Source: Octopus bimaculoides (lineage: Eukaryota). Taken from it: a stretch of DNA of 52,105 nucleotides. Of the stretch, positions 11,257-38,195 are shown piece by piece (the first letter of the stretch is position 1; each line of letters starts with the position of its first letter). A program made the position numbers and the translations under genes. The stretch is taken from contig NC_068983.1 of the NCBI RefSeq assembly GCF_001194135.2, positions 110,908,833 to 110,960,937 of the forward strand. Reading direction: 5' to 3'. The notes under the pieces are model-generated. The model made no database searches. It saw only the letters and a list, made by a program, of their open reading frames with translations, and had not been told where the DNA came from.

Positions 11257-11425
11257 ATGGCATATATCCAAAAATTACTGGAGACATGTGTACTAATGAG
11301 CATGGTAATTGAGGTTTCATTTGGTAGAAATTTTCCGTTGAACAACACGAACACACTTCAATTGGAGGCAAAACTACCCGAAGTAATATCCGCAGATTCT
11401 ATTCCAATGAAATCAACTACATACA
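11257..11425 (+). CDS. First coding exon of Pif-like LamG protein (putative signal peptide + linker)
   Basis: Acceptor aacacag at 11248, ATG at 11257, MAYIQKLLETCVLMSMVIEVSFG-RNFPLNNTNTLQLEAKLPEVISADSIPMKSTTY. Hydrophobic stretch ends in small residues (SFG). Donor A|gtaagc is phase 1, matching the phase-1 acceptor at 29272. Confidence 0.7.
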
Positions 11426-12129
11426 GTAAGCTATCGTGATATTATTTTTCTTCTTTTCAAGAGGTTACATGTATATTTTCAAATAACTGTAATGTTAACA
11501 TGCAGGAAGACACACATAGAATACATGTGCAGACACGACTTTTCATAAATTTTTTTTTTCAAATCTTATTCAAAAGTTCAACACCATAGGTGACCTTTTA
11601 CTTTTATACATATTGAATCGTAAGATTACTGACAAACTTTGATATTACACAAGTAAAAAAGACAATACTGTGTGTATGTATGTATATATCTAGCAATCTT
11701 ACTATCACTTGACATACAGATAGATAGCAATATCTTTCTCACTCTCTCACTCCACACACATACACATATATATGCTAACACACAAATGCATACATATATG
11801 CTTCGCGCTCCAACAACTGATAGAATGGCATAATAATGACTATCCTTTCGAAAGCACGTTAGTGTCATATTTAAATTGGGTGACACCTACTGGAACTCAA
11901 GAATAGGATTCAAATTATCTACTGACCGTTTACACATTATATATACGTAACACCATATACTGACGTATTTAAAAGCAAAGGATTCGACATTTGCTACATT
12001 TACTCTCAGAAATTAGAAAATAGTAAGTAAATACAAGAAGACATTTTGTTAAACCGACGAAATATTCTTTCATACATGACAATAATGATTTTTGATATCA
12101 GCACAACTTCATAAATAAAGTCTATATTG

Positions 12130-12360
12130 GCAGTGAATACCAGATCGAGTAATATGTCTTTTCGACCAAGATAAGGAATGAGCGGTGCTTGAGTAAAACT
12201 CTAGTATTGCTAGGATGAGATTTCCCATCCTTCTGAGTACTTTTGGCTGACGCGACACTTTATGTCAAAACACCAGTATCCCGTGATGCAGTGCGTCATT
12301 TAGACCATTTTGTTGAACACACTGATGTCTAAAATAGAGAGGTTATTCTCATAAAACATA
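12130..12360 (-). mobile_element. Old Penelope-like RT thumb remnant
   Basis: Minus strand ENNLSILDISVF...KCRVSQKY resembles the PLE E..LPFLD...Y.K...S....K.G region; heavily decayed. Confidence 0.35.
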
Positions 12361-13079
12361 TACTACAGCATTCACAATAGTTTGCGTGAATCCGCCTGCT
12401 TAGACATGTTAAGAATAAATATGCAAATAATCATTCCTGATCTCGCCGTAAATGGTGCAAACAACGCTTTTAATTGTCATTTTGTTTTGGTTTATTTCAT
12501 TTAATTTCAACGAACAGATTAAGCTAAACTACATGTAATTATATCACATTAATATTTTCGTTTTGCTAATATTGCTGAATAAAAAGCTACTCTAAATAAT
12601 CCCTGTAAACCAAACATTATATGAGAATATCGAGACTATAGGACTGCCCAGATTTAAAAGTGAAATTAGCACCAATTATGCATTAACAACTATTAAATGA
12701 GGGTTGGACATCAAGGAACACATGTGAAAGTTCAAAATATCAGTCATTTTTGAAGCAGTTCTTATTCATAGAAAGATATCTTCTACTTGGGACTTTTTTG
12801 TTAATGCTCTGCATTTAACGTGAAGAAGAAATATCATTAAAAATCTGATATTGTATATCCATTCTGTGCAACAAAATATAATAACAACGACAACAGCCAC
12901 AACATATAATCTTAGCTAATCATCTTTTCCTGATTGTTAAATATTGCTGTGATCCCTTATTTCCATCCATCCACCCCTCCGTTTTCTCTACTGACGATTC
13001 TTGGAAGAGCTATGGTGGTAGAAACCACAGGCACCTCCTCAGTAAGGTCCCATTAAAAGTAACCTACATTATATTTACC

Positions 13080-13950
13080 TGCTGGATTGCTTAACATGCC
13101 CAGCTGAGACTATAGATATGATACAGTAATCTCGTTCTTAGTCTTCCCGTAGGCCTCCTGCCGGTGGGCTCGGCTTGAAAAGGCTGTATTACAATACTTT
13201 TCTGTAGCATACCAGTCATATGTTGGCAGCACTGGAACGATGATGTCTCAGTGCAGAGAAATAAGAGCTCGACAAAGAGAGAAGTCTTTATCTCCGAGCT
13301 ACGCACCTATGGCGTAACGTTATTCTAAATCTTTTGGTGAGAATACCATTTCGGCTGCGTGTATTTGCGATCGTACTCATTGTCATTCATGACGATAAGT
13401 GAGAATCAACGTGAAAAATCGAATTGACGATAGCGGATTTGGTTCTTCTGCAGGTTGAATGTTGGAGCTGGAACACTACTGTGCAGCACCTGCGATTTTA
13501 GCATCCAACTCAACCTCCAGTTTTCCATCCCTACCGATCTAGTGTTGGGTAAATACATTTTTTATTGAGTGGACATTTCCTTTTTCGGATTATTTCTGAA
13601 CAGAAACAGAGACCAGTTAGAAAAGGCTGAAGAGACATTTTCTCGATGTGTCTGAATATTGCAGCTAAACTTGTGAGGCACAGATTCGTCGTTATATAAA
13701 TATCTTCAGTATTTGGGCTAAAAAGTCATAAACGCGAGAGAAGTGCGGTTAGGACGTTGGCTCTTGGATTCTTGTCATCGTTGTATCGCAGTACTGATTG
13801 GTAATCCCTGTAGATATAATAATGGAAAGCATACATCGGCAGGGACCTGGCTGGATTTATAACACCAATGAACTACGAAAAACCCAAATCGGCCCAGTTT
13901 AGACATACGGAAAGAAGAGCTGTATTCTGAATGTGTAGGACAAAAAGTAG
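13080..13950 (-). mobile_element. RTE-clade LINE 3' fragment (pseudogenised)
   Basis: Minus peptides GRDGKLEVELDAKIAGA and QAEPTGRRPTGRLRTR..W resemble the RTE post-RT region (DGKLE.E...RI..A; GRRP.GRPR.RW). Confidence 0.6.
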
Positions 13951-15795
13951 CATTTGCTGTAGCTGTGATATCAAAAACCTCTTGAGAGTACATAGCCGTA
14001 AAGGGTTGGAGAAATAAGGTGGAGCGCAATCTACCCTCCGTCACAGTTCCAGAGACAGCAGTAACGGTAGTATTGCCATTTTCCCTTCCACTACCGTTTT
14101 CTCTCCTAATGGTTACACTAAAGGGTTCCTGAAGTATGAGCATGATCCAGTGGTGTAGTCGAGAACCGTTTAATCTTAGCTTAAAACCTCTATCAGTGCT
14201 GCTTATTTACTTTCAACTCGTACAGATTATATCCTGAATGGAGGGACATTCTGCACCCCTAGATTTTAGACAGTTTACATTATTTATTGTTGTTTCTTCC
14301 GTCTTTTCACAACTACCTGCTTTCTACTTGTTGGCTTTCTTTGAAAACAGAAAATGTTTTATGTAACCTTCATGGTTTTTAACTATCCATTGTATTTTAA
14401 TCGTTCTTTATGAATTCCTACAATACATATTTTAGAATAATTTTCTATCTGCACAAGCTTCCTACCACTTTGTATTCCTCGTAAATCTATGTCAGATTTC
14501 AACTGGCGCTTTCGAAATTCAGTCATTAGTAATTTATTTCCCAGATATAAAATGAATTTTAAAATATAAATTACAATTACATAAACTGTAATTTCCTGCT
14601 GAGATTCTCGACTGCGACGTAGAATCAAGGCTGGATGGATTGGGGCTAATTGTATTGTCATTTTGCGTTCAGATGTTTAAAGTGTCAATGCAATGCTTTT
14701 ATGACACACTCTCTTAATCTTTTCTCATCACATACCCCCTCCTTTTCTTTCTATTATCTAATGATGACGATTATTGCCCTACAATACTATTTCCCACAAT
14801 GCTGTTGATTGTTTTCCTATAAAGATCGACCTGGTACAATATTCTCATTTTCTAAATTTTTCTTCTACATTTATTTATAGCTCGACAAGCACAATTCTCT
14901 CTCTTCCACTGCTTTCTTTTGATTGTTTCTTGTTTAGTCAGTTACTCAGAATCCTCTATATCTCTTTATCTTCTTCTTCACCTCGTTTTTATTGTTCGTT
15001 TATCTTTGGATATTTCTATTATATTTTTTATCCTATCCATTTGTCTTGTTACTTCTATCCCTCCCTTCTCTATTTCTAAATTCCGACAAGATGTATTTTT
15101 TGAAATGCAGACAAACAAAATATCTCGTCCCTGACATTTATGTATCCGTTAAAGGTTCTCAAGTTCAAATATTTTTCAAGAGAACATACTTAACATTGTT
15201 TTGGACCCGTTAACATAATATCTGGCTTTAGAGTGAAATTTTCATTTGAAAGTGATCCCTTCGCGTTTAGGTTTCCAGATTAAAACCTAAAACTCGAAAG
15301 ATGGTTGTTATATGCGGATTTAAATTTTCAGTCTACGTCCCTGATATAACATTTGTTCACTATGACTATTGTCGTAGTTCTGTGAAGCCTGCGCTTCATT
15401 AACAACAGAAGATATATCGCACTTCCGTCCTAGAGGACATTTGAATTTGTCTTTACATGTGCATCCAGGGCTGGCTTGATTTGTCTTTTGCTTATTGATA
15501 TTTGACAGGTAAAGGTAATTTTTATTGTGTCAAAGATTTTATAGTGAAAAAAGGGTCTGGGGGAGTCCGTTTCGATTAAGTGCAACATTTTCTACCTACA
15601 TTTGTCCTAACATTAATGAATACGTATGTATGTATATATGTATATATATATGTGCGTATATATATAGTCGAATCGAAAATTAAAAGTTGAACATTAACAA
15701 TCGAGTATTAAAAATAACGATATCAAAATAACAAGGAGACGTACACATGGAATGTTGTAGTTTGACGTTTGATAAAGGTCGGAAAAAAGGTTGTT

Positions 15796-15830
15796 TTTTA
15801 ACGTTTCGAGCATAGCTTTTCGTCAGAAAG
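15796..15830 (-). ncRNA. Minimal type I hammerhead ribozyme-like motif (PLE terminal repeat)
   Basis: Minus strand cttt CTGACGA a aagc tat gctc GAAA CGT T aaaa: intact CUGANGA and GAAA, short stem II, palindromic ACGT stem III, weak U-A stem I. Confidence 0.65.
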
Positions 15831-16561
15831 GAAAACAAAAACAACACGCGTGTGGTTACATGACATAACGAGACAGAGAGATAAAGAAAGATAGATAAAC
15901 AGATAGATAGAGAGAGACAAAGAGAGAGAGAGAGAACTTCCTGATGGTTTGATGATTATTGTTTCACACCATCTATTATTTACGCATTTAATGTATATGA
16001 CAATACTACTAACATAGACAGTGTGATACTTAAAATAATTTTCATATTTCAAGTTTAGGATATTTCTTGACGTTTTATATTACGCAAAGATAATAATTTA
16101 GTTCAATATCGAATAAAGTCTTGAATTGGGAATCTAAGAAAACTGGTGGAGACCTCCGTCTGCAACAATAATCTCATAGAGGATTTGCTGTGTCAATAAG
16201 TTCGCCTGCTGAAATATTATATGAACTATCTTAATTCAATATTGGTTATGTATGTTTATATACATGATACATATAAATTGATTCTGAACGGCACAAGTGT
16301 GTGTGTGTGTGTTTGTCTGTGTCTGTGTATTTGTTTCGGGAAAATCATTTTATCTGAAGCGCTATATTGAGAGGACGAAAAAAGTACGAAAAAAACATTG
16401 TTTCATTTGGCGATTCTCAGCTGTTTGAATGCCAAATCTGGAGATAGAAAGATAGGGATAGCAAAAAAAAAAAACCCAAAAAAACCTTCAACTCAAGTCT
16501 TATTTATGTCACACTCATCGTGAAACATATAACTTCACATCCATATATGTACACGTGGACA

Positions 16562-17756
16562 TGCGAGAGTGCTATCAAATGTAATGCATAAATAGGTATA
16601 AATGTATATTAACTGAGAGAGGTCTTTCAAATTATATATATTGTTAGAGTAACATTTTGTCTATTAAAAGATACTACGCAATATAATTTCCATCCAAAGC
16701 GATGCATTTTCACCATTGTCGAACCAGACACTAGGAAACACTTTGAGCTTTGCACTGTTGTGCCCACTACTTCACATCATCTCTGTTAGTGAATAGTTGT
16801 TCCTAAAAGCCTTTTTCCTTAGACTGAATAGGGAGTGCAAAATCCTAGGTGAACCAGACCCGAGGTGTACAACTAATCCAGTGAATTTGTTGATTGAATT
16901 GTTTATTGTCGAAGGTTCGTGTGATGACGCATTGTCTTGATTTAAATGTATCGTTTTAAGTTATTTGTTTAGTTTCTTCCTCCTAAAACAATATTTTACA
17001 TTTTTCAACGTTTCTAGTGAATGTGCTGCTCACTGTGTATGATACAACCACATTCCAGGAAATGAAGAGTGACATCCTTATCATATTCTAATAAAGAAAC
17101 CATTACTTTCTTTGCCGATCTCTCGCTCTTTTAGAAATGTGTCTATATTTCTTGAAATCACCCTTCAGCTTCGGAAGTTTAAGATACGTACTTGTCACTG
17201 CGTGTAACAAAAAATATATCTTTGGATTTCAGTAGATAAGAGTAGGGTCCCACAAATCTCTGTCCTTTAAATCAAGCGTCGATTAACGAGCTATTAGCTT
17301 TGCATCCATTTTCTAATCCCCAAGGTCTTCTGTCATGCATAGTGCAGTCCTACAACCAGCTCACGTATTATAACTCCGTTGTCCACGCGATTCGGTTGAA
17401 CCACTGACTGGTGATTCCTGTCAGTGGTCGATATTAACGATTTCTAGTTGCATTATTTGACTTCTATGCCGGTTCCACTCCTTTGTATCCTTCATTCACT
17501 TGCACACATTACTCTTGTCATCTCTGGAAACAACCTGTAGCCTTCTGTGAATGTAAGACAGCTTACATCTCTCCTCCGTCACAATCTCAATGACATCACA
17601 TTGTTTCTGCTTGGAACCCGTTATATGTCTGCAACAAAGAAGAATAATAGAGAAAGCGTTACTCTACTAGCATAAGCAATTTAAACGACTTATACCAATT
17701 CATAAAAAAAAAAATGTTAGTCCCAGTTTTGCAGTACTTTCGGCACAATTCTCGAA
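16562..17756 (-). mobile_element. Decayed full-size mariner transposon
   Basis: Minus peptides KQKQCDVIEIVTEERCKLSYIHRRLQVV (HTH), RKVMVSLL..DKDV..HFLE (catalytic domain) and LVRQW*KCIALDGNYI (C-terminus). Degenerate TIRs cgagagtgctatcaaatgtaatgca / rc cgagaattgtgccgaaagtactgca. About 1.2 kb. Confidence 0.75.
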
Positions 17757-17930
17757 TGTATTCTAGCTAGAATGAAAATATAGCATTCAAATTAAGAACA
17801 CGTAAGACACGGTAGAATATATATTTATTCCAACGTAAGACATAATAGAATATATATTTATTCCAACTTATTCCAGTTTCGTTTTAGGACTGGTCAAAGA
17901 CAAAACCGAAATTAGCTTACAATTTCATTT

Positions 17931-17988
<58 letters not shown>

Positions 17989-18116
17989 CGCGTGTACTTT
18001 ATCCAGCAGAGGTATGGCAGACCGATTAATCGGTTTGATTTGCAATCACCATACCGTTCCAAAATCAATCGCACCTTGTGGCGTCTTATTTAAGTTTCTT
18101 TTAACTTATTTCATAG

Positions 18117-18170
18117 CCATAGAGGGAAAATGTGGAGACGGAAATTGCGAAGGAGCTCCCCAGACGGTTT
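18117..18170 (+). CDS. Candidate 54 nt symmetric (phase 1-1) internal exon of the Pif-like gene
   Basis: Polypyrimidine acceptor tttcttttaacttatttcatag; open frame (T)IEGKCGDGNCEGAPQTV; donor T|gtaact. Frame-compatible with both neighbouring exons. Confidence 0.4.
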
Positions 18171-19523
18171 GTAACTATAATTTAAAGATCCAGCCTTTTA
18201 ACACTTATCCTTCTTTAGAGGGATAAGTAAAAATACGAATATCCGTAGAATACCTGGCCATTTTATTTGCTAGTTTAATGAGAAGGTATTTCAGTCTTTC
18301 AAAGTACAGAATACTCATCACCAAAACTGACGGATATCCATTTACTTTGTTTTTTGATTTACTTCACAAAGTTCAATATTACCTGTTTCTAGTGGTCAGT
18401 AAATACTAATATATCAGCATGCCTGCAGACACATCTCAAAATGTTTCACCAACTACTTCCTGTATTTTAATTACCTAAATCTCATTCTGACTTGTCATAA
18501 ATCTTCTTTTATACTCATATCCTGAAAGAATGAAAACAATCACGAACAGAAGAGCGAAGTATGACACATTCTATCTCGATCAAAGTGGCATAGCAACAAG
18601 AGCCTGGGGATGTAGAGGAAGAGTTCAAAACACAAAAGACTTTTTCAAACATAGACCATAATTTTCAGTCAGTTGCATTACAATTACTTCATTACAGTGG
18701 CATTAGGTAAAAGTTTATATATATTAATTACATAGATATGTAGAAAGCTCTCTCTTCAACTGTATTCCTTTGTAGATTTGTGTGTGTTTAAGCGAATGTT
18801 TAATGGTTAGTATTTTTACATTTACTGAGCAGTTTTTGATGCCTGCACTCAACATTATCAGTGCTGGTCCTAGTTGTAGTCTTGATCTTCAGCATCATAC
18901 ATTTTAACTTAATCTGAATTTCTACAAATATCACCAGTTCAAATATCATAGAATTTTGTATAATTAGTGTGTTTAACTACAACGAGTTTCGTTTCACTTT
19001 CTAGAACTTTCCAGATGAATTCAATTCTTTCAGAATTGTCATATCCTTTTCATGTTATCATTAAACATATAGCTAGCGAAGATATGCTGAATATTGTTTA
19101 ATTTACTATTTTGCATTCTTGCAGAATAGGTCTTCTCGTAGATAAACATTATCTTCAGCATACTATGGTAACATTAGATTATATATGAATTTTGAATGTT
19201 GTTATTGTCGTACTATTCATTAAGTTGAGATAAAAACGTTTGTAATATGCAACAATTCGCAATTTTCACAGGAAATAAAGACCGATTTTTATACAAATGT
19301 TTATTTTGAATATTCTTTGCCTTTCTAATGTTTCTTGTTTGATCATTAATATCAAGAAAAATCTATTTTGTGATATTTCCTGGTCGTTTTTAAGAATGAA
19401 TTTCATTGTTCTTGTTAACTATAGGGATATAATAGTATATATATTTTAATGATATGTATTTTGTACGCTAGTAAGCTAACGATTATGTCAATAATACTAA
19501 TGGTAAACTTTGAATTCACACTT

Positions 19524-19680
19524 CGGCACAAGGCCAGCTATTTCGTGGGAGAGGATAAGTCGATTACATTGATCCCAGTGATAAACTAGTACTTATTTTC
19601 TCGACCCCGAAAGGTATGATAGGCAAAGTTGACTTCGTGAGAGTTTGAACCTAAACCATAAAGACGCACGCTAATATTAC
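19524..19680 (-). mobile_element. tRNA-SINE family B (Meta/RUDI-like central domain), inverted partial copy
   Basis: Reverse complement contains tcaactttgcctatcatacctttcggggtcgagaaaataagtact; homologous to 19703-19920 and 32198-32418. Confidence 0.8.
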
Positions 19681-19702
19681 GTTTAATATGACATCTTTAG
19701 CG

Positions 19703-19920
19703 AAGGCGATGAGCTGGATGAATCGTTAGCATTCCGGGCAAAATGCTTAACGCCATTTCGTCCGATTTTTGCGTTCTGCGTTCAAATTCCACCGAGGTTG
19801 ACGTTGCCTTTCATCCATCAAAATTGATAAAATAGTTATCAATCGACGTCTTGGAGCGATATAATCGACTTACTCCCTCCCCCGAACTTACTGTCCTTGT
19901 GCCAAAATTTGAGACCAATA
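19703..19920 (+). mobile_element. tRNA-SINE family B
   Basis: aaggcgatgagctggatgaatcgttagc head, gttcaaattcc B box, gttgacgttgcctttcatcc body, ccttgtgccaaaatttga tail. Confidence 0.85.
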
Positions 19921-20336
19921 TTATATCTCTAGTTTTCTTACTTGAACAACAGGTGGGTGTTCGAACTATAAGGCTAATTTAACTAATCCAATACTATATG
20001 AGGTCTACGTGAATGGAATTTGGATGACCAGACGTTGTGCATTAGGTTCCCAGTTCAATCAGTCTCTGTGCTCCTGTTCGTCTTTTACGAAAAGTAAAAC
20101 TGGTAAGTTCTTTAATGTTGATTTTTATAAGAAAGCGGCATCTCAATGCCTATTTTAAAATATTCATCAACTGAATATTGTATGAAAAATATGATTACTT
20201 TCCCCAAAAAACATAAATTGTATAATTTTGCTAATAGTGTATATTTCATGCATTTGTACGAAACTAAAAGAAGCAATTGGTTATTAAATGCAATGTTTTA
20301 TTGTCTTAATTAATTGTTTTTGCAAACGTTTGCAGT

Positions 20337-20520
20337 GATACAGTTCTATATTTTAGAGATGAGGAATTATGTACGTTATTTGCATTATTTACATTTAACG
20401 GATATTTGTCCACATCTTGTTTGTTGTTAACACGTTTCAGCTGATATACCTTAAAGCCTTCATCAGGTATCTTAGGGAGATTTCGAACCTGGGTTCTCAT
20501 TCCTAAGGTATTTTTCAATT
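20337..20520 (-). mobile_element. 3' module of hammerhead-bearing SINE (family D), inverted copy
   Basis: Reverse complement ttgaaaaataccttaggaatgagaacccaggttcgaaat...cctgatgaaggct...gaaacgtgttaac matches 20990-21140. A 3 nt deletion removes the cleavage triplet context. Confidence 0.85.
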
Positions 20521-20530
20521 TTATTATTAC

Positions 20531-20558
<28 letters not shown>

Positions 20559-20561
<3 letters not shown>

Positions 20562-20769
20562 TAGTTTTATTTTTATAACGTGCTTTCACTTCACTACCGA
20601 GCGCAGCTCTGTGCGCCTTGGGTATGTGCTGTGGTTTGCTGTGGTGCTCTTATGTTTACTGTATTGAAAGTGTTTTGCGTAGAATGTGTGCAGTACCCAG
20701 TAGTGCAATTTTCTGTATGTTATATATATTTGTAAGTCCTGGTGTTTTTGTTATGTATTTGTCTGAATA

Positions 20770-20776
<7 letters not shown>
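20559..20776 (-). mobile_element. R4/Dong-clade (RLE) LINE 3' end flanked by (TAA)n
   Basis: Minus strand KYITKTPGLTNIYNIQKIALLGTAHILRKTLSIQ* matches the RLE-LINE C-terminal QK..LLGTA.ILR motif, followed by a short 3' UTR and (TAA)n. Confidence 0.75.
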
Positions 20777-20860
<84 letters not shown>

Positions 20861-20875
20861 TTGCCCACGGGCATA

Positions 20876-20930
20876 TGGCGTAGTGGTTAAGAGCGCGGGC
20901 TACTAACCCCAAGATTCCGAGTTCGATTCC
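20876..20930 (+). promoter_or_regulatory. Pol III type-2 internal promoter (A and B boxes) of SINE head
   Basis: A box TGGCGTAGTGG at 20876-20886 and B box GAGTTCGATTCC at 20919-20930, with an anticodon-arm-like gcggg-ctactaa-cccc between them. Confidence 0.75.
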
Positions 20931-21036
20931 AGGCAGTGACCTGAATAATAATAATAATAATAATGATAATAATAGCAACAATGATAACATTGAAAAATAC
21001 CTTAGGAATGAGAACCTACGTTCGAAATTTCCCCAA

Positions 21037-21082
21037 TATACCTGATGAAGGCTGGAGGGTATATCAGCCGAAACGTTGTGTT
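21037..21082 (+). ncRNA. Minimal type I hammerhead ribozyme
   Basis: ATAC/GTGT stem I (one G-U), CTGATGA at 21042-21048, stem II GGCTG/CAGCC, GAAA at 21070-21073, palindromic ACGT stem III, triplet GTT with cut after 21077. Confidence 0.7.
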
Positions 21083-24000
21083 AACAACAGAGAAGATGTG
21101 GACAAATATCTGTCGAATATAAATAATGTAAATAACGGTTGCAGTGAATCTACAATATTTACTTTATGCCCTATATATGCTTTATTCTTTGTTCATGTAC
21201 TGTGCATTTCGGTTGCCTCAATAAGTGTGTGAAGGTATTATTTCAATTAATAAATGCTTAATATATCCCTATTTGCAAAATATATCTTATTAACAAAATA
21301 TATCTTATTTCTTTTTATATTGTTCTCATTAAATTTTGTATGGAACATCGAATCTGTTTTCTCCTAGCAATTTAAAATCAAATTTGCCATTCAACTTTTC
21401 AGAGTTGGACAAATTACTTTTCTAACCCAGAGTGGTAGTTTGGTGAAATTGTCAGTATGTTGAATGAGACGATTGGCTTTATCTTCTTGCGGCCTAAGTG
21501 CTTGTGTAGTAGACTCAATCCATTTCTCTTTTTAATACAACTATGTGGACCCTGGGTTACTTTGTAGCAAATATTTCAGTCAGGTTTCCAATTTAAAGGT
21601 AACTTCTTTTGTCATTCCGATTAGTATGAAATACTTAAAAAAATAAGAGATCATGAATGTTGCTGCCTCTCCCTGACTAAGCTTTTGTAGAGTAAACTGC
21701 TATTTGTTGATTGATATTTAAAAATAACATAGATACTAAAAAATTTGGGGCACCTGTTATATTATTTCGGGAGATATTGGCATGTTGAATTATCTGAGTC
21801 AAGATTTATTTATCCTTTAAATTTCTTCATAAGAAAATGATGCGAATGCAAAGGAGCGATAAGTTCTTTGTGAGCTGATTCTAATAACCTATTTCTGGTT
21901 TTGGTTCCACTAATTTGAATCCAGTTCTATTGCGGTGGCACTGGAAAGTAGACATGCCTATATACTGGATCCAACATGCTATACTCACCACTGTAGAACT
22001 TAGAACACAGTAAATAGTGAGTGAAGTATTGATAATGTTATAGTGTTGATGCTACAACTTTTAGAGTTGAGTAATTTCTCTACGGGATATTTACACTCAT
22101 GCAAACACATTATGCATTTGTAAATTAAAAATTTTAGCCTTATGCGCAGAGCATTGTTGACAACAAGATATGAACCGGAGCCAACATAATTGCATGTCTG
22201 ATACCTATCAACTCAGCTAATTTTCTTTCTCTTATCCCAGTTTAGTACTTTTGCGATTTGCTTTACTATATTGTGATAACATATGAGCTTCACTTATACG
22301 TACGTGAAAAGTCAATATATCTTCTTCAGGAGGTAATCACGGCAGAATAAGAATATTCTGATTAGCGAATTTCTGATATATTTTCAACTCGCGTTTAGAA
22401 CCATTTCAATTAACTTATTTCCTTCAAAAATCTTCTGCATCCTGTCTTCATCCATCAGTGAAAATCGATTTTTCTTTTCTAGACTGGTACTGTTGTACAT
22501 CAGTGCATATTCAGCAAAAGTGTCTAAGATATAAATTCAATTACTCCACAACTCTAGTAGTGTATGTAGTGGTCTAAACGACTTACCATGTTCAATATTC
22601 AACCTAAATTTCTCTCTAAATAATCCTTCATACGTTAGGCAAAATAAGTGGTATGTCGAATGTAGCAAAGTATATTAACGTCACCAGTTTTATCAAGTAC
22701 GATGATACGGGTAACATCTATTACAATGTTTTATTAGCATTCAGGAATATAATGTTCTATGATTTATCTAATGTAATTATAAATTAGGTCAGGGAACTTG
22801 TATAAGCTGAAAATTATAACTTGATTCCAGACCCATCACGCAAGGATTTAAATATTTGTTGTCTTGCATTTTCCACAAATTACGAAATATTGACTTGTTT
22901 TTGATAAATAACAAAAACCTTACTGTTATATTTATAATTTCACATAAACAATTAGAAGCATGAAGAAATTCAGCTATTCAACATGATTTCCGTCTGTACG
23001 ATGCCGTCTCCGACAATTTTGTAAGATGTGTCTAGTTATTTGCAGTTAAACATTTCAAAGTGTATTTGCATATACTGCACATAATACAATGCATCAACAT
23101 ATATATTAATAATCGGAGCTGCCTTTGATATTGAATCAATGCTCCTATTTCATATACGATGCTAAATCTTGTAACAATATTTTATTTACAGTATCTTTCC
23201 TAAATTAAGGAAATCTATACAAAGTGAAACTACATTCACCTGCTTCGAGAGTATGCAGATTAATAATGCTTTCTGTATTTGCTTGACAAGTCCAAAACGA
23301 AAAGAAAACTAATTTGTCTTTCCTAAGGCGTAGAACGTGTTAAAGAGAACATAAATTACAACCCCGCTACATACCCCAATATAAATTCAATTGCTTTTTA
23401 TACAATATTCAAATACTATAAAACTGATGAGAATTATCGATATATTATTCCATGGCAAACACTAGGTATGTACGTTTGCAGTTCATATTTCCTACCTGTC
23501 CTAAATGCTGTGCAATTTTAAATTTATAAAAATGCTACATACAATTACCTGAAAGTAGTTGTTATTATTTTCGCAAAACTATTTTTCAGAGTTATTCAAA
23601 CTTAAAATAAAATGCTGTATTTAATGCAAGGAAATCCTAGACGTCCATCTTATGGATGCTTCAGATTTCAATGTTAACGCTTGACCTTCATATAAGACAA
23701 GTTATCGCAAGAGCTCATTTATCAATAGCACATTAAAAATAAACCCTGCAATCCAAAGAAATACTTATCTTCTTCCTTGGTGTGAATAAAGATTTGTGGC
23801 AATAGACGAAAGAAGCGGTGGTAATGTGAAGATGCAAGCCATTCTAATAATTGTTGATTTCCGTTGCACGTTTGCACAAGTCATTACCTTTTTCTTTTCG
23901 GTTGATGTATTATCTTTACTGTAATTTCTCTAGTGAGATTGCTTTACAACGTCCTTTATGTTTCTTAAATTCACTATATTTCGATAAATATGTGGTTTAA

Positions 24001-24979: not shown

Positions 24980-25114
24980 TCCAACAACTGATGAAGGTTG
25001 TTCTTCATGTTACTTGTTTTGTTTTCCATTTGTTTCTCTCGTTTGTGTATTCAACTCATTTGTTTTCGTATTTCATGTTGTTTACGGTGTGTGACGTCCT
25101 GTACCCACATATGC

Positions 25115-25153
<39 letters not shown>

Positions 25154-26265: not shown

Positions 26266-26310
<45 letters not shown>

Positions 26311-27463
26311 TGTTTAGACACAGTAGTAGAAAATATTACATTCGCGCTACGGTTAATCCCGTGAAACAACATATTTCTATGCAGAAGCACAACTCTGTAA
26401 CCAGATAATATAGCTCTACTTCATTCACTGAATATATCCATAGTTAATATGATAACAAGGTAATTTATATTTTAAAATGTCTGGTGAAGATACATGCCAT
26501 TAATGTACCAGTGAGGTTTCATCCCTGCGGGTTGCATACCAAGGTGGGGTTGTGGATTGTATTAGCTAACACACTCTCCTTGTACGAACCCCTTTCTTAT
26601 TCTGCGTATGTATCCTACCCGTGCTTGTATCGAGAACACTTTTATGGATTACCGGATTATTGCACTACTAGAGACAATAAGATGCATGACAATGGATAAC
26701 TTCGTGTGCCAACCGACCTGACTTTGATCAAGAATGTACAATGACCTAAAAGATGACGGAGAAAACTTGTAATATAACGCCTTTTTGGCGGAATGCAACT
26801 TGCATTTCGTACGACTTTGGACTGAGTTGGCTTAAAACTTAGTAGACCAGACGAATGCACATCAAAGTCTCGAGAAAAAAAAAAAACATTGCTTATGTGA
26901 ATACAAACAAACATTACAATGGCAAGAGACAGTCAATAGGTGCGCGATCGAGAAGGGTAGTAGTAACTTAAGAAGTTTAGTTGCCGTACGGTATGATATT
27001 AAGGAGGAAATTCATGCACGAGTATATGTATGCATATATACGTACTGGTGCATCGTGAACGCTCGCATGTACATGTATGTGTATGCATGTGTGAACTTGT
27101 ATGTGTGAATAATTTCTCGTATGTGTCCGGCAGAGTATGTTCAGGTATGTGCATATAATCGTATACGTACGTTGATGAACGCGTGCGAGTGGCTGTATGC
27201 GTGATTAGACGTTACACCACATTCCACTCACTAGAGGTTACGGAGATATTTACAAATACTTGCTTCCTCTACCATAATGCTGGTTCCTTGAAGCTAAGTT
27301 TATGAGCCTGTGGTCATCTGTAGTGACCACTATCTCTCTCCATCCCTCATATACGTCAGTAGCTGTTCGTAGAGCGAGTGATATTTTCGCTATTGTTGTC
27401 ACGTTTGTAGCCGCTGTGACTGACGTTTGTATTGTCTTTACCATTGTTAGCATTGCTTTGGAG

Positions 27464-27513
27464 TTTCTTCTTCTTCTTCTTCTTCTTCTTCTTCTTCTTC
27501 TTCTTCTTCTTCT

Positions 27514-27590
<77 letters not shown>

Positions 27591-27672
27591 TTCCTCTTCT
27601 TCTTCTTCTTCCTCTCCATCTTCCTCTTCTTCTTCTTCTTCCTCTCCTTCATCTTCTTCTTCCTCTTCTTCA

Positions 27673-27707
<35 letters not shown>

Positions 27708-27783
27708 TTCCTCTTCTTCTTCTTCTTCTTCCTCTCCATCTTCCTCTTCTTCTTCTTCTTCCTCTTCTTCATCTTCTTCTTCC

Positions 27784-27819
<36 letters not shown>

Positions 27820-27861
27820 TCTTCTTCTTCCTCTTCTTCTTCTTCCTCTACTTCTTCCTCT

Positions 27862-27911
<50 letters not shown>

Positions 27912-28019
27912 ATCTTCTTCTTCTTCTTCTTCTTCTTCTTCTTCTTCTTCTTCTTCCCCTCCTCCTCCTCCTCATTCTTCTTCTTCTTCTTTCTTTCTTT
28001 CTTTCTCTCTTTCTTTCTC

Positions 28020-28074
<55 letters not shown>
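27464..28074. repeat. ~610 bp polypyrimidine tract: (CTT)n/(CCT) compound repeat ending in (CT)n
   Basis: Nearly purine-free + strand. Source of the poly-L, poly-K and poly-F pseudo-ORFs. Confidence 0.95.
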
Positions 28075-28075
<1 letters not shown>

Positions 28076-28650
28076 AATATCTATGTGCACAGTTGTGAAT
28101 GTGCATAAGTGTCTATCTAAAGATGTACGAGAGGGCGTAGCATCCACTGTCTTCTTTGCATTGACCATTTCTATCTTATCCTGGGCATTTTGTCACCCAG
28201 TATTCCATTGCATGGGCATAGTAAGTAATTTGCGTAATTTGCGTATATTGAACAAAGCTAATGATGTACTTTGCATCTTGTGTAGAAAACACTAACGTGG
28301 AGTTTCGATGAGAATGCAATTTCGCCAAACAGCTGCATAATCTTGCCAGTTGATTTACTGAAACAATTATTCCGCACACTAGTCTATCCCGAGGTTTGAT
28401 GACAATAGTCTAACAGCAATGGACGCAAGAGTCTAATGGGGAACTTATTACCGAGCCCTATCATATGGTTATGTGTCGCAATTTCAAGTGCGTGTATATA
28501 CTGTAAATAATGAGAGAAAATATAGGGAGACGCGCAAGCAAGGCCGTTTGGTAAAGAGGTCATATTATATAAACAAAATCGTAGCTTTTTAGTTTTGCAT
28601 TCAAGTGGGGAAGTGCTGAATCTTATATTAGATTTTATTAATATATCATA

Positions 28651-29160
28651 GGCGTAGGAGTGTCTGTGTGGTAAGTAGCTTGCTTACCAAGCACATGGTT
28701 CCGGGTTCAGTCCCACTGCGTGGCACCTTGGGTAAGTGTCTTCTACTATAGCCTCGGGCCGACCAAAGCCTTGTGAGTGGATTTGGTAGACGGAAACTGA
28801 AAGAAGCCTGTCGTATATATGTACATATATATATATATATATANNNNNNNNNNNNNNNNNNNNNNNNNNNNNNNNNNNNNNNNNNNNNNNNNNNNNNNNN
28901 NNNNNNNATATATATATGTATGTGTGTGTGTATATGTTTGTGTATCTCTGTTTGTCCCCCCCCCCAACATCGCTTGACAACCGATGCCGGTGTGTTTACG
29001 TCCCCGTAACTTAGCGGTTCGGCTAAAGAGACCGATAGAATAAGTACTAGGCTTCCAAAGAATAAGTCCTGGGGTCGATTAGCTCGACTAAAAGGCGGTG
29101 CTCCAGCATGGCCACAGTCACATGACTGAAACAAGTAAAAGAGTAAAAGAGTAAAAGAGA
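28651..29160 (+). mobile_element. Full-length family A SINE (contains assembly gap 28844-28907 in its microsatellite spacer)
   Basis: ggcgtaggagtgtctgtgtggtaagtagc...ccgggttcagtccc...gtaaaagagtaaaagagtaaaagaga; well preserved relative to 1829-2240. Confidence 0.92.
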
Positions 29161-29271
29161 TATCACATGCTAAAACTCTCCCCTGTTTTTACTCTGAGTT
29201 TCCCGTTCATTGACAGTTCTTTATATATAAAAATCAAAGGCTTGATAGCTTCTTTCAATTATCTCTTTCAG

Positions 29272-29630
29272 ATTGTGTTAAAGAACTGCATATCAATTTT
29301 GACAATGGTATAAAAGATATTTCGTCTTCCCTTCAGACAATTGCAATTATGAATGTAAATACAGAAGATGGTAAAGGAATATTTAATGGTGGAAAATTGA
29401 CACTTTGGAGATATAATGGATATTCATTTCCTAATGGAATCACGTTTCATTTATCCTACAAAAGAACTGACTTCACAGAGGGATTGCAAGCAATTTTCAT
29501 GAGCTGCGATGAAAATAATCACAAAGCCAATCTTGGCATTATGCTGAACGCTACCTCTGCTGCAGAAGACAAAGTGCATATCTTTGTTCGTCCAAATAGA
29601 CGCAACACGGAATTGGTGTTTGCATCGCAG
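29272..29630 (+). CDS. Exon encoding the N-terminal part of a LamG/ConA-like domain (Pif/BMSP-like)
   Basis: Acceptor atctctttcag, 359 nt open frame xCVKELHINFDNGIKDISS...GKGIFNGGKLTLWRYNG...LQAIFMSCD...ELVFASQ, donor CAG|gtatat. The pattern C..ELH.NFD.G..D.S...G...F.G...L..WR is typical of molluscan Pif-like LamG domains. Confidence 0.88.
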
Positions 29631-29723: not shown

Positions 29724-29783
<60 letters not shown>

Positions 29784-34648: not shown

Positions 34649-34739
34649 AAATCCGACTGGAATGATGTATATTTCTTGTTCAACAAATATTACTTGAATG
34701 CGACTGTGAATCATGAGACAAAATCTATTAAAGTTTCAG
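34649..34739 (+). CDS. Pif-like LamG exon
   Basis: tttacag|KSDWNDVYFLFNKYYLNATVNHETKSIKVS G|gtaaat; 91 nt, phase 0 to 1. Contains the LamG W..V...Y/F......VN motif. Confidence 0.85.
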
Positions 34740-37249
34740 GTAAATTTAACTTTATCTTACAAAAGAAATTATTCGTGATTATTTGTATTTTACAATAATT
34801 ATCCATGTGTATTACATAGTCTAAGTTTTTAGATAGTGCAACGCAACGTCGTATATGTAATTTCCGTTTATCTGACTCTAGAGTTTATTCAACTCATGAA
34901 ATAAATTTTGCGTACAGTACTTTCAGTGCTAAAAAAAGTATCTGACGTAGAAGCTTGCTTCATTGTGTTCTTTCTTACTTATTCGGTTTATTTGTATACA
35001 AGCGGTTGGCATACGTACCTTACAAACATTATATGCTTCGCCATAACGTGGTGAAAGTCGAGTCTCTTGAGTGAAAAATCTATTAATTATAGAGAAGAAA
35101 TCTCTCATTGCCACATTTCATTCACTAGTAATCTTAGTCAACAAATATAGCAATCATTAGCTGATATAATCATAAATGATATACCTTTTATTTACTAATG
35201 AGATCTTTTGTAATCGAATGTTACTTATTTTTAATTTCAGAATAAATGCTCTTAGGATTCAAATATATTTAACTGAATTTAAATGAAACCACTATATTAC
35301 GGTCATTATATTTATCGACAATAAACGTCATTAAGTGAACGACAAAGCTAGCAAAGCTTGATCTTGAAACCTAGATGCAGGAAACGTCTGTCTGTATCAA
35401 ATTTAATTCACTGCTCTGCAACATTCGTCAGATCCCTACAAAGCTATAATAAAGACTATTTTCTAATTTTAGCCCACAATCGCGTACGTGTAAATAAATC
35501 TATCAAAACGTACATCTGCTGTTTATTTTCTCGGGCCCAAGTATGCAATGTTGCCTATTTTACGTTATCAAAAGTTTTAACTTTAGAACTTTTTTTCCAA
35601 TGAAAATAAGGTTTCAAGGCCCACCTCAAGTTCCTAGTACTACGCTATTCAGAGACACCTATATTTAATTTGAGCTGCTGTGATGTGTTTAGGCTGATGA
35701 AAGTCATAGATGTGTTCTCCTCTCTGGTGGTGCGATATTCCAATAGAGTTGATATGGAAGAATGATATCTCGCATTGCCCCTTAGCATTTTAATCTCCCA
35801 GAAAATACAAAATATAAGTAACATATCTCGTGAAAGTTAGGTAGAGTGGTTAGTATTCTATTTAGAATGTGACTTTACATTGAAAAATGCCACATTGCAA
35901 CTAAGAAACCTGCTAGCTTTTGAAGTTAGAGCGTATAGAGTCAAAACTAAATATTTCATTTTCCTTGTACCGCTTCTAAACTTCAGATATGACAATTTAA
36001 GTTGCATCTGATTCCAATTCGTGAAATATATTTTTCCTGTTCATTTTGATTGATATTCCAACTTCAATGTATTAAGATATTTTAATTATTTAAGATGTGG
36101 GGACAATTTAATTACTGTTCAGATAACAGGTGCACTTCAGCAGACACCATCTGAGCATTTTATATACATTTATGCGCTACTTAAAATGGGCAAGAAATCA
36201 TAGTTTGGACTGAGATTTAGGTTTGAAAATGCAGACACTTTACAGACAGTTACGCATAATTTTGTTTATATCCATATCAGAAAATTCAGTTGATGTTTGA
36301 AATGTGACAGACGGTGCAATCCAACGTCTCTGGCTAAAGTATTTATATAGTTTATATACATTATTTTAATTACTAATACCACCAATTATTAGCAGCCTAT
36401 GTGGATAGATATACGTACATTGAAGCATGTATAACTCATACATACTCACTCATACATGTATACATACTCACATATACGTACACACACAGTATTTATAAGA
36501 TAAAGGGTTGCAGTATTTATGACAAATATCTTACGATGTTGTACGCGAAAGTTAAGAGACAAACGTGAACACTACAATGTCTACAGTTTCAAAATGAACC
36601 AATATTAACTCATGGGTAAAAATCTTTAATGTACTTTAATGTGTGTATCAGTTTCTCTTTCTCTCTCTTTCCTTTGTTTGTTTATTTGTTTTTTCCTTCT
36701 GTCTTTCACTTTCTCTCCAACACTCTCTTCTACCCATCCGCTACATACTTGATAGTGGATTTGTTTTCATGTATCTGTAAGTTACATTAGATAATAAATT
36801 TATCGCTCCAACTTGAACAGAAATGCAATGCAGGGCACTGTCACAAGTATATGTATGTTGCCTGAGACAGCAGTTCACCATTCGTTATAAATGAAGAAAT
36901 TCTACATTCATGTTTTTAAGGTTTGGAAATTCATTTGATTTCTGGCACGTTTAAGTATGTATCATGGTCCATCTGGTGGTGACTTCTTCAGCTTCAATGT
37001 TTGTCTGCGTTACGCAGCGCCAACATTTAGTGCACTTGCTGCTGTTACATTCGCTGTCTGTTCTATAGTCGTTTGTGGGTTCGATCATTTGCTACTGCGG
37101 CATTGCTGATTAGTGAATAATATAGTCGATGCTAGTTGTCTATCTGCATAATAATGATAACGACGCTAAAATAGGCCGCTATAGCGACAGGAGCCTAATC
37201 ATATTCTGTAAAAGTCTATAATAAACTTCTATGCAATCCTTTATTTTTC

Positions 37250-37674
37250 CACACATAGGATCGATTTTCTTCACTACTTCATGGGAGACGACCCTGCCTG
37301 ACACGAGTCCCAGGCTCAGCTGGCTCCGGCTGATAGTACCTGGTATGTGCCCCTATCCAGAGTTACGGAAAGGAGACAACCTTCAAAGAAATCCGGAGTG
37401 GAGCCCCGTAGGCGGTTTAGAGTTCGACTCGACACTTCCGGCAGCTCCTGCAACCAAGCAGGTGCCAAACGTAATGCTCTGCACTCCTTTGGGCTACATC
37501 AGCAAGGTCGAGAGTGGAATCCTGACGATTGGGCTACCCGGGATTTTCTTATATCTATCCTAGGCCTGCGCAAGACTGGAAAGGACATGAAGTGTAGAAA
37601 CCAGACTGGATTAGTTTATGCGCAACTCCATTGTCTCCAGAGACAAAAGGGTGCCAACAACAACAACAACAACA
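37250..37674 (+). mobile_element. GC-rich non-autonomous element, probably RTE-derived (5' UTR-like part + 3' end with (CAA)n tail)
   Basis: GC island with no meaningful ORF, ending tgtctccagagacaaaagggtgcc(aac)n, resembling RTE-type 3' ends with short tandem tails. Confidence 0.5.
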
Positions 37675-37937
37675 GGGAGCCATATATCACTCAAATCAAG
37701 TATAAATGTCATTAAAGAAATATAGCACATTGCATAGTACACTTTTAAACACACTCTAAAATAGATAAAATTTAATGTTCTCGATCAAAGCTAACTTGGG
37801 ACAGCACATTTGATCACAAACAATTTTATGAGAGATAACTTTGATTTAATAACAACAATAACAATGCGTTTTGCATTTAGAAAAAAATCAGTTCTTTTCA
37901 ACCTAAATAATATCTAAACTTTACATGTTTTCTACAG

Positions 37938-38020
37938 AACAGAACATGCAAACTGGAGGATATAATATACTCTTTGGGGCATGTGCACCACTGAAACCGT
38001 TTATAGGATATATGGATGAT
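37938..38020 (+). CDS. Pif-like LamG exon (C-terminal strands)
   Basis: ttttctacag|(E)QNMQTGGYNILFGACAPLKPFIGYMDD|gtaagt; 83 nt, phase 1 to 0. IG.C....F.GYMDD is the canonical LamG C-terminal signature. Confidence 0.88.
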
Positions 38021-38115
38021 GTAAGTGTCATTATTTTCTTATTATGCGCTGATTTAATTATCATAAAAATTTAATTTATTCATTTTATTCCGCATATTAC
38101 GTCCAATTTCTGCAG

Positions 38116-38195
38116 AATTTGAGGCGTATTTCTGCTATATATAGCAGAAATATTTTGAATTCTTCAAAACAGGAAAAAAACGCTCAGCAAGAACA
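38116..38195 (+). CDS. Following exon of the Pif-like gene (reading frame ambiguous)
   Basis: Acceptor tttctgcag at 38115 after a 95 nt intron; strong donor CA|gtgagt at 38196. The in-phase frame reads NLRRISAIYSRNIL...; the +2 frame reads FEAYFCYI* with stop at 38142-38144. Confidence 0.6.

Follow-up and report, generated by a model that had tools for sequence, protein, structure and literature searches.

The window (the whole stretch of DNA analysed, 52,105 nucleotides) lies on chromosome CM046603.1 of Octopus bimaculoides, a shell-less cephalopod, as the original prediction had supposed. It contains one gene with six coding exons on the forward strand (positions 11257-47411), annotated there as "asparagine-rich protein" of 296 amino acids. 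The gene is a minimal member of a molluscan shell-matrix protein family: it codes for a chitin-binding-like (CB-like) module followed by a LamG-like (LG) domain only, without VWA and without a canonical ChtBD2 array. We consider this reading, combined with a role as a matrix adaptor that we infer for the product, to be the best explanation overall and a probable one.

Exon map and transcripts

In all six exons the window encodes exactly the protein entry P0001 ('asparagine-rich protein [Octopus bimaculoides]'), and the gene call in GCA_001194135.2 (CM046603.1) corresponds to window positions 11257-47411. The coding sequence comprises 891 nt (296 codons and the stop), while the gene ends near 47.8 kb. 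The features are as follows.

Exon 1: 11249..11425, forward strand; 5'UTR 11249-11256, ATG at 11257, coding sequence 11257-11425; RNA contigs X4, X9 and X10.
Exon 2: 19953..20102, forward strand; 150 nt, phase 1 to phase 1; tblastn of P0001, AG/GT borders and RNA.
Exon 3: 29272..29630, forward strand; Cys108 and the N-terminal two-thirds of the predicted LamG/ConA-like domain; RNA contigs.
Exon 4: 34649..34739, forward strand; predicted LamG domain continued; spliced joint from 34739 to 37938 (GT..AG) in X4, X9 and X10.
Exon 5: 37938..38020, forward strand; predicted LamG domain continued; no stop codon before its GT donor.
Exon 6: 47373..47806, forward strand; coding sequence 47373-47411 (ISLYTCIPREAK), then 3'UTR; tblastn, sequence and RNA loose end.
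Assembly gap: 28844..28907, no strand; in intron 2, 365 nt 5' of exon 3, within a high-copy interspersed repeat.

Contigs from three RNA runs (X4, 1355 nt; X10, 1857 nt; X9, 824 nt) cover exons 1, 3, 4 and 5 exactly and give the exon order 1, 3, 4, 5, 6, with an exon of 150 nt between the first two. In all three, the match starts at 11249, after an AG acceptor, and continues to the donor at 11425; at least one further 5'UTR exon is located outside the readable window. An in-frame TAA, reconstructed from the RNA contig loose end plus 11249-11256, stands 12 nt 5' of the ATG, and therefore the observed transcripts have no N-terminal extension. Over exon 3 the RNA contig match runs exactly from 29271 to 29630, and this exon scored best against the family HMM in six-frame translation (E=9e-25). 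At the other end, the RNA contig loose end beyond 38020 reads ATATCATTATACACATGC..., which is the window from 47373 onward. Exon 6 has the stop TGA at 47409-47411, carries the conserved C290 together with the predicted final LamG strand, and shows AATAAA-type signals in its 3'UTR near 47757-47770. The X4 contig, judged by its length, would put the 3' end at ~47806, and a longer 3' form reaching ~48328 is implied by the X10 contig.

Inclusion of exon 2 is based on loose ends, length arithmetic and a k-mer index, no RNA contig having been placed directly on this exon. The gap between exon 1 and exon 3 is exactly 150 nt in the X4, X9 and X10 contigs, the loose end after exon 1 equals window 19955-19984, i.e. 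exon-2 sequence, and 11 of 11 sampled exon-2 words are present in each of the three. In a sister species the end of exon 2 is likewise spliced to exon 3.

The original prediction had assembled five exons into a coding sequence of 756 nt (702 nt without an optional exon) within a locus ending at 38144. Four of them (11257-11425, 29272-29630, 34649-34739 and 37938-38020) proved exact by AG/GT borders, P0001 and RNA contigs X4, X9 and X10. Exon 2 and the terminal coding exon (47373-47411) had been overlooked, leaving both the coding sequence and the gene too short; the exons nevertheless joined in phase without exon 2 because 150 nt is a multiple of 3. The optional exon (18117..18170, forward strand) has zero RNA depth, is absent from P0001 and is excluded by the 150-nt contig spacing. 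In 11426-29271, 401 segments that are bounded by AG..GT, in frame and free of stops occur by chance, and this is one of them.

The repeat bearing the assembly gap (~28640-29171) has a DNA word depth near 10^6, compared to ~12 in the flanking single-copy sequence. Unique contigs end at 28676 and restart at 29136 around the gap, which is present identically (28844-28907) in GCA_001194135.2. Since exons 2 and 3 are adjacent in the transcripts, the gap leaves the reading frame intact.

Expression and splicing are visible in a subset of RNA runs, with contig word depth of up to 305. Several RNA runs lack the gene, and two deep 2026 RNA-seq runs, of which ~6% each was sampled, gave zero reads for it. 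Related octopods have the gene and express it as well; in exon 3, sister-species contigs differ by four synonymous and two conservative non-synonymous changes.

Domains of the protein

The 296-residue protein probably starts with a signal peptide (aa 1-23, MAYIQKLLETCVLMSMVIEVSFG), encoded in exon 1 along with a linker that has an NNT sequon. Hydropathy reaches its maximum over aa 10-18 and S-x-G occupies positions -3 and -1 of the putative cleavage site, so that the signal peptide, which had been proposed from the outset, is plausible as a prediction; its hydrophobic core includes two glutamates. After the short linker come a four-cysteine module (aa ~58-100) and a predicted LamG/ConA-like beta-sandwich (aa ~108-292, exons 3-6). 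There are five N-x-S/T sequons (one in the linker, two in each of the following regions), and N (9.5%) is the most abundant residue, ahead of L and S (8.4% each). A low-complexity CaCO3-binding region, acidic or basic, like that of Pif80 is absent from the 296-aa sequence. Pfam detects no VWA in P0001, and neither tblastn with 97 full-length homologues nor a six-frame search revealed a VWA-like exon anywhere in the window, in agreement with the original prediction.

Exon 2 encodes aa 57-106 (SGCSNYKANLTNPILYEVYVNGIWMTRRCALGSQFNQSLCSCSSFTKSKT), a CBM_14-like module with cysteines C59, C85, C96 and C98, which are followed by C108 in exon 3. These five cysteines are invariant in 39 sequences, C290 being nearly so. 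The module precedes the LamG domain in every aligned homologue, and query region 59-101 aligns with its tandem copies in other proteins. In the SNCD motif the near-invariant Asn is replaced by Ser in the octopus. We found no Pfam match to CBM_14 in the octopus protein, even at E<=10, and no canonical CBM_14 by six-frame search elsewhere in the window; among 39 homologue segments trimmed to the matched unit, CBM_14 was detected in seven. PDB profile searches with the module returned the chitotriosidase chitin-binding domain (E=0.04) and squid chitin-binding beak protein 3 (E=0.9), both above normal thresholds. Alignment to canonical CBM_14 with hhalign gave E=3e-4 with a probability of only 39%, the cysteines being in register. 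Weakly but consistently, these comparisons suggest that the module is distantly related to CBM_14/ChtBD2, and weak 'CBM_14L' classes have been recognized (PMC11291548).

The large domain downstream of the CB-like module is predicted to be a LamG/ConA-like two-sheet jelly-roll beta-sandwich. Laminin_G_3 gives no Pfam match in the octopus protein, even at E<=10, and is detected in 28 of the 39 trimmed homologue segments. The AlphaFold2 model built with an alignment (pLDDT 91.9, pTM 0.77) has 13 strands over model residues 61-237, corresponding to aa 112-288. Foldseek matched it to 289 PDB entries at E<=1e-3 with LamG-like domains at the head. The best matches (E 6e-8 to 1e-5) were botulinum-toxin Hc-N, NEL, AbnA domain 4, thrombospondin-N and neurexin LNS, which are ConA-like/LamG jelly rolls. 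Our domain calls thus rest on transitive homology and predicted fold, and on these grounds the originally proposed LamG of the type that is C-terminal in Pif/BMSP-like proteins holds.

Family placement and possible role

An exhaustive HMMER search yielded 99 matches at E<=1e-3; all those with a named source organism are molluscan, and most align by their C-terminal ends. Among full-length matches, Pfam found CBM_14 in 30 of 55, Laminin_G_3 in 17 and VWA in nine. Pif/BMSP, LamG3/Pif-like and NRP shell-matrix proteins of molluscs have in common a conserved C-terminal unit, the pair of CB-like module and LG domain, and an LG domain downstream of a CB domain is the Pif/BMSP pattern (PMC7747718).

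Within this family the octopus gene appears to sit nearest the bivalve NRP (asparagine-rich, prism-layer) group. In the neighbor-joining tree it branches with NRP-type proteins. Its sister group belongs to the NRP set in 131 of 200 bootstrap trees, a modest value, and exact monophyly of the NRP grouping was recovered in 72 of 200. Its distance to NRP-type proteins is 0.72-0.79, as opposed to 0.87-0.89 to the cephalopod/gastropod LamG3/Pif-like proteins (P0086, P0100, P0101 and P0102), which form a separate clade. The supposed Pif/BMSP-type kinship is therefore right as to the common CB and LG unit, and off in that the nearest relatives appear to be bivalve NRPs, not Pif or BMSP proper.

The octopus protein is probably secreted and N-glycosylated, and it would probably act as a matrix-organising adaptor. 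Its CB-like module and lectin-fold LG domain may attach to chitin or a different polysaccharide and to partner components of the matrix. Candidate sites are chitin-based extracellular structures of the animal, for example the stylet/shell-sac remnant, the beak, radula or statocyst, or the cuticle of sucker or oesophagus. It might be argued instead that the protein serves as a soluble lectin or in pattern recognition, as an immune or mucus factor, which binds foreign or mucosal glycans and is not part of a structural matrix. Folds of the ConA-like/LamG kind commonly act as scaffolds for binding glycans and ligands, the protein is small and probably secreted with its five sequons, it lacks an acidic mineral-binding low-complexity region, and the octopus has no external shell. 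However, those of the closest homologues that have been characterized, H2A0M0 (the Pinctada NRP) and the 'sushi-like' shell protein of Mytilus coruscus, belong to the shell matrix, the related LamG3/Pif-like protein of cephalopods is one of eggcase matrix and epithelia (bioRxiv 10.1101/2021.07.10.451900), and evidence of immune induction is lacking. We consider such a role unlikely. Quite improbable, in our view, is a decaying shell-matrix relic, transcribed at a low level and functionless in a shell-less animal. It could explain the loss of the N-terminal domains of bivalve relatives, the failure of Pfam to recognize the domains, the Asn to Ser change in SNCD and the runs in which the gene is missing. 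Yet the open reading frame is intact, the six exons are canonically spliced, every invariant cysteine is kept, the AlphaFold model is confident and contig word depth in RNA runs reaches 305. Moreover, related octopods retain and express the gene with mostly synonymous differences.

The original prediction viewed the gene as a truncated Pif/BMSP paralog consisting of a signal peptide and a stand-alone LamG, with no chitin-binding-type exon. Four exons do join in frame, and Pfam finds canonical CBM_14 or VWA neither in the protein nor in the window. Nevertheless, in all three RNA contigs exons 1 and 3 are separated by exon 2 (150 nt), the sister species splices it as well, the module is invariant across the family, and the shorter model ends without a stop codon. 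The transcripts, then, essentially contain the extra ChtBD2 exon whose presence was to count against a stand-alone LamG, in the form of a weakly CBM_14/ChtBD2-related four-cysteine module. The stand-alone model is refuted as the main isoform and has very little probability left. A truncated architecture is correct with respect to the absent VWA; the CB-like module, on the other hand, is retained, and ChtBD with LamG3 but no VWA was already on record in cephalopods, shell-less octopuses among them (bioRxiv 10.1101/2021.07.10.451900). The octopus gene with its CB-like module and LG domain adds to this published architecture and is of modest interest in that respect.

Comparison with known systems

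We now compare the minimal CB-like and LG gene of the shell-matrix family, our preferred reading, with its known counterparts. The alignment of the exon-2 module with CBM_14/ChtBD2 peritrophin-A domains (chitotriosidase ChBD, PDB 6so0; squid beak protein 3, PDB 7bwe) covers the middle and C-terminal part of the latter. The module shares their 'C-P/A-x-G-x-x-F/W ... C' pattern with cysteines in register, and occupies the position of the CB domain ahead of LG. In contrast to these domains with their six cysteines, it has four, Tyr and other residues standing in place of the C2-C3 pair; it ends in a C-x-C motif and scores below Pfam thresholds. Chitin binding is putative and not assured, because this pair of the canonical domain is missing.

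Pif/BMSP proteins (nacre VWA - chitin-binding - laminin G) have the same CB and LG order on the C-terminal side (PMC7747718, PMC11291548). Homologues with VWA and CBM_14, such as the M. coruscus 'sushi-like' shell protein, are among the top matches (E 5.9e-18). The octopus protein is set apart from published descriptions of Pif/BMSP by the absence of VWA, of an acidic/basic low-complexity mineral-binding region and of a proteolytic two-chain organization.

The LamG3/Pif-like proteins of cephalopods are secreted, lack VWA, have a chitin-binding-type region followed by Laminin_G_3 and occur in shell-less octopuses. Yet they are ~420 aa long, possess canonical CBM_14 domains (E ~1e-10 to 1e-11) and are distant from the octopus gene (E ~1e-4 versus 1e-22 for NRP; 23% identity). 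They are a lineage paralogous to it.

The best-scoring relatives are NRP of Pinctada margaritifera (H2A0M0) and the 'asparagine-rich protein-like' sequences of Mytilus, Dreissena, Saccostrea and Argopecten, with E-values from 2.8e-22 (P0003) through 7.5e-18 (P0005) to 1.3e-15 (P0008, i.e. H2A0M0) and coverage of aa ~36-294. Bivalve NRPs are 458-2320 aa long with extended N-terminal regions (Ig-like, repetitive or unassigned), whereas the octopus protein has only the putative signal peptide and a 34-aa linker before the unit, and identity is only 24-33%. The Pinctada NRP is a 'prism uncharacterized shell protein' in UniProt, while the octopus is without an external shell. Nonetheless, the RefSeq name is the same, the match spans both the four-cysteine module and the LG domain, and the invariant cysteines are common to both.

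Exon structure and expression of the gene

The joined exons of the original prediction had a single database match, P0001, a 296-aa protein annotated as ‘asparagine-rich protein [Octopus bimaculoides]’. This protein maps onto the window in six blocks with 100% identity (tblastn). On GCA_001194135.2 CM046603.1, the publicly available gene call coincides exactly with window positions 11257-47411; the window is the CM046603.1 sequence offset by 1256 bases, with identical N gaps. The guess that the DNA comes from a shell-less cephalopod was thus right, as the gene call in the O. bimaculoides assembly matches. The rebuilt coding sequence (891 nt) translates into P0001 exactly. The exons are as follows:

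11249-11425: exon 1, encoding the probable signal peptide
19953-20102: exon 2, 150 nt, missed originally; falls between exon 1 and the first LamG exon, with AG/GT borders
29272-29630: exon 3
34649-34739: exon 4
37938-38020: exon 5
47373 to about 47806: exon 6, missed originally; 47373-47411 encodes ISLYTCIPREAK and then a stop

The five exons proposed from the sequence alone do have AG/GT borders and do join in frame, but the resulting model stops at a GT donor and has no stop codon. Nor is the set complete, since P0001 contains two more segments, 19953-20102 and 47373-47411. Omission of exon 2 keeps the frame because its length is a multiple of three, and for this reason the original join looked coherent. 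The exon proposed as optional, 18117-18170, had to be abandoned: RNA depth there is zero, the 150-nt spacing leaves no room for it and P0001 lacks it. This segment is only one among 401 expected in the interval that are bounded by AG..GT, in frame and open.

The gene is spliced, expressed and conserved. Three RNA runs from the same organism (X4, X9 and X10) yielded one spliced contig each, matching 11249-11425, 29272-29630, 34649-34739 and 37938-38020 with zero mismatches. Each of the three contigs has exactly 150 nt between exon 1 and exon 3. Past exon 1 they read GGGTGTTCGAACTATAAGGCTAATTTAACT, as in window 19955-19984, and the base preceding exon 3 is G, matching position 20102. The joint between exons 4 and 5 is GT..AG, and past exon 5 the contigs continue with 47373 onward. 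All 11 sampled exon-2 words were present in X4, X9 and X10 (k-mer index), the only same-organism runs classed as RNA that contain exon 2; the same three contain exon 3. Moreover, RNA contigs of a closely related species also join the end of exon 2 to exon 3. Direct placement on exon 2 (window 19900-20160) at 80-95% likeness gave no contigs for X4, X9, X10 or X25. The contigs left unplaced nonetheless read into exon 2, and the missing placement is regarded as a tool artefact.

In the transcripts, 11249 is preceded by a 5'UTR exon (at least 41-61 nt long) that is spliced to it and ends in ...TGATTGAACAACTTGGGGTTATCAGCTAAC. Neither the readable window nor the sequence L001 contains this exon; it may be located in the N gaps 4263-4868 or 6206-6308, or further upstream. 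There is a TAA in frame 12 nt 5' of the ATG, and therefore an N-terminal extension is ruled out in the observed transcripts.

Expression of the gene is restricted. The transcript was present in one run from 2015 and two from 2020, whereas sibling runs in those studies have none of the sampled words, and two 2026 raw-read runs (X41 and X42) had no reads in the ~6% of each that was sampled. Several related species have orthologous sequence that is transcribed. Against these, exon 3 shows four synonymous and two conservative nonsynonymous differences (K121R and N215H), too few for a formal test.

Intron 2 contains an assembly gap (28844-28907), 365 nt 5' of exon 3, that sits within an ~530-bp element with a DNA word depth of ~10^6 versus ~12 in the flanks. 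Unique genomic contigs end at 28676 and restart at 29136; the gap was not closable with short-read contigs, and the public chromosome-scale assembly keeps the same gap. Continuity across it is irrelevant to the reading frame, because transcripts join exon 2 straight to exon 3. Other features observed in the window are listed below.

28640-29171, 17930-17995 and 29724-29783: intronic interspersed repeats or microsatellites of very high copy number; word depth ~10^6 in DNA versus ~12 in single-copy flanks, abundant in RNA runs on both strands
27465-27991: (TTC)n microsatellite in intron 2, ~176 copies, 86% match, giving spurious poly-Leu, poly-Phe and poly-Lys ORFs
41091-42276 (+): two adjacent ORFs in intron 5 (153 and 237 aa), with no Pfam match at E<=0.01; the second has ‘RYLDDSFIIW’, whose resemblance to the reverse-transcriptase YxDD box suggests a degraded retroelement
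51126-51797: large imperfect palindrome or inverted repeat downstream of the gene, 78.6% identical to its own reverse complement over 687 nt
6001-8000: strong strand asymmetry just past the second assembly gap (GC 0.43, GC skew +0.41)
6450-7533 (minus strand): long Pro/Ser/Thr-rich ORFs
1374-1529: a 77-bp unit duplicated in tandem (2 copies, 89% match)

The LamG domain and the four-cysteine module

Pfam searches with either P0001 or the originally proposed model gave no LamG or CBM_14 match even at E<=10. Since Pfam is silent on the octopus protein, domain identity was taken from homologues and fold. A word-indexed homologue search matched P0001 alone and, with a profile, five proteins. HMMER, run exhaustively against 1.84 billion representatives (E<=1e-3), revealed 99 relatives, most of them 350-2300 aa long and most matching by their C-terminal 230-250 residues. 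All matches with an organism named in the source are molluscan. They include the Pinctada margaritifera Asparagine-rich protein/‘prism uncharacterized shell protein’ (UniProt H2A0M0), a Mytilus coruscus ‘sushi-like’ shell protein, ‘asparagine-rich protein-like’ sequences of Mytilus, Dreissena, Saccostrea and Argopecten, and gastropod ‘SCO-spondin-like’ proteins. The profile search added ‘protein PIF-like [Haliotis asinina]’ and octopod LOC115219174 proteins (CBM_14 + Laminin_G_3).

Among the full-length matches (n=55), CBM_14 was detected in 30, Laminin_G_3 in 17 and VWA in 9. Once matches were trimmed to the region corresponding to octopus residues 52-296 (n=39), Laminin_G_3 was found in 28, Laminin_G_2 in 9 and CBM_14 in 7. 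AlphaFold2 run on the single sequence was useless (pLDDT 34); rerun with the 39-sequence alignment, it produced a confident model (pLDDT 91.9, pTM 0.77). Foldseek matched this model to ConA-like/LamG jelly rolls in the PDB (E 6e-8 to 1e-5), among them the botulinum-toxin Hc N-subdomain, NEL, domain 4 of the arabinanase AbnA, the thrombospondin-1 N-domain, PAPP-A and the neurexin LNS domain. The proposed LamG domain is thus borne out by homologues and predicted fold, though not by Pfam on the octopus sequence itself.

In the trimmed alignment, the exon-2 segment is conserved to the same degree as the LamG domain. Five cysteines (C59, C85, C96, C98 and C108) are invariant across the 39 sequences, C290 almost invariant; the exon-2 module has the consensus C-x(11-12)-Y-x(5)-G-W-x-x-R-x-C-A-x-G-T-x-F-x(4)-C-x-C. 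Disulfide bonds are predicted within the set C59/C85/C96/C98 and for C108-C290. Several comparisons relate this module to CBM_14. Pfam assigns CBM_14 to 7/39 homologous segments, and two repeat proteins have partial CBM_14 matches over the module (profile positions 22-48). A PDB profile search found the chitotriosidase chitin-binding domain (E=0.04) and, at lower scores, a chitinase ChBD and squid chitin-binding beak protein 3. Alignment with ten canonical CBM_14 domains from the same match set (hhalign, E=3e-4, probability 39%) put ‘C-A/P-x-G’ and the terminal cysteines in register, with CBM_14 cysteines 2 and 3 missing from the module. A canonical-CBM_14 HMM run on the six-frame translation of the window ranked the exon-2 ORF first (E=0.066). 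These signals are weak, and all point in one direction, toward a putative relation between the module and CBM_14.

Weakly scoring ‘CBM_14L’ classes have already been recognized in Pif/BMSP proteins (PMC11291548), and the LG domain has been described as placed directly downstream of the CB domain (PMC7747718). Based on the weak matches and this published CBM_14L/LG pattern, we consider exon 2 to encode a CBM_14-related four-Cys module with putative chitin binding. Other molluscan proteins also contain the module, tandemly repeated and adjoining canonical CBM_14 domains. Four homologues (P0054, P0081, P0022 and P0044) have arrays of 2 to ~7 copies, immediately preceded in one of them by a canonical CBM_14, which suggests that the module represents a repeat family of its own, derived from CBM_14 and uncurated.

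The four-Cys module and the LamG domain form a single conserved unit. The original prediction envisaged a stand-alone LamG protein with no chitin-binding-type exon between signal peptide and LamG; exon 2 lies precisely there, and the architecture is probable signal peptide, linker, CB-like module and LamG. The search of both strands found no VWA or canonical CBM_14 exon anywhere in the window, and no second family member that would indicate a tandem family was found in it. The N-terminus has a hydrophobic core, with two glutamates within it, and small residues at -3 and -1 relative to the junction between MAYIQKLLETCVLMSMVIEVSFG and RN. Asparagine is the commonest residue (9.5%) and there are five N-x-S/T sequons.

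Possible function

The octopus protein belongs to the molluscan CB+LG shell-matrix superfamily. It is probably secreted and glycosylated, and probably serves as a small adaptor within an extracellular matrix based on chitin, where the module and the lectin-fold domain would bind polysaccharide and partner proteins. Its relatives suggest, as candidate places of action, the stylet sac, epithelia that secrete cuticle, the beak or radula and the statocyst. One main rival to a matrix adaptor is a soluble lectin or immune factor. The other, that the gene is a decaying relic, is opposed by an ORF that is intact, conserved and well expressed.

A bolder reading of the adaptor role is that the CB-like + LG cassette is the self-sufficient functional core of Pif, BMSP and NRP. 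The shell-less octopus would then keep a core-only copy of the NRP lineage and use it in making some chitinous or mineral structure other than a shell (the stylet, which is the shell vestige, statolith, beak, radula or sucker lining). We regard this as rather unlikely; if true, it would offer a direct handle on the roles of shell-matrix genes after shell loss.

Relation to known shell-matrix proteins

Since the gene already has an annotation and the wider theme has been published, the gain is incremental. Proteins with ChtBD and LamG3 but without VWA have been reported in cephalopods including shell-less octopuses (10.1101/2021.07.10.451900), as has a single-VWA BMSP in O. bimaculoides (PMC11291548). 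Our literature search found no paper on the NRP-type octopus gene. What is specific here is modest: an NRP-lineage copy cut down to the bare CB-like + LG unit, as one conserved cassette. With it, the shell-matrix-related genes persisting in shell-less cephalopods gain one small, expressed member of NRP type. Were its site of expression to be the stylet sac, statocyst, beak or sucker epithelium, the gene would provide a compact model for a unit organizing chitin-based matrices and help to explain why such genes survived shell loss.

In a neighbor-joining tree of 74 trimmed units, from a comparison lacking authentic Pif and BMSP sequences, the octopus gene falls within the NRP group, apart from the LamG3/Pif-like clade. 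Bootstrap support is modest (131/200 for a sister group inside the NRP set and 72/200 for exact monophyly). Judged by E-value, bivalve NRP-type proteins (1e-22 to 1e-15) are far closer to the octopus gene than is the octopod's LamG3/Pif-like paralog (~1e-4).
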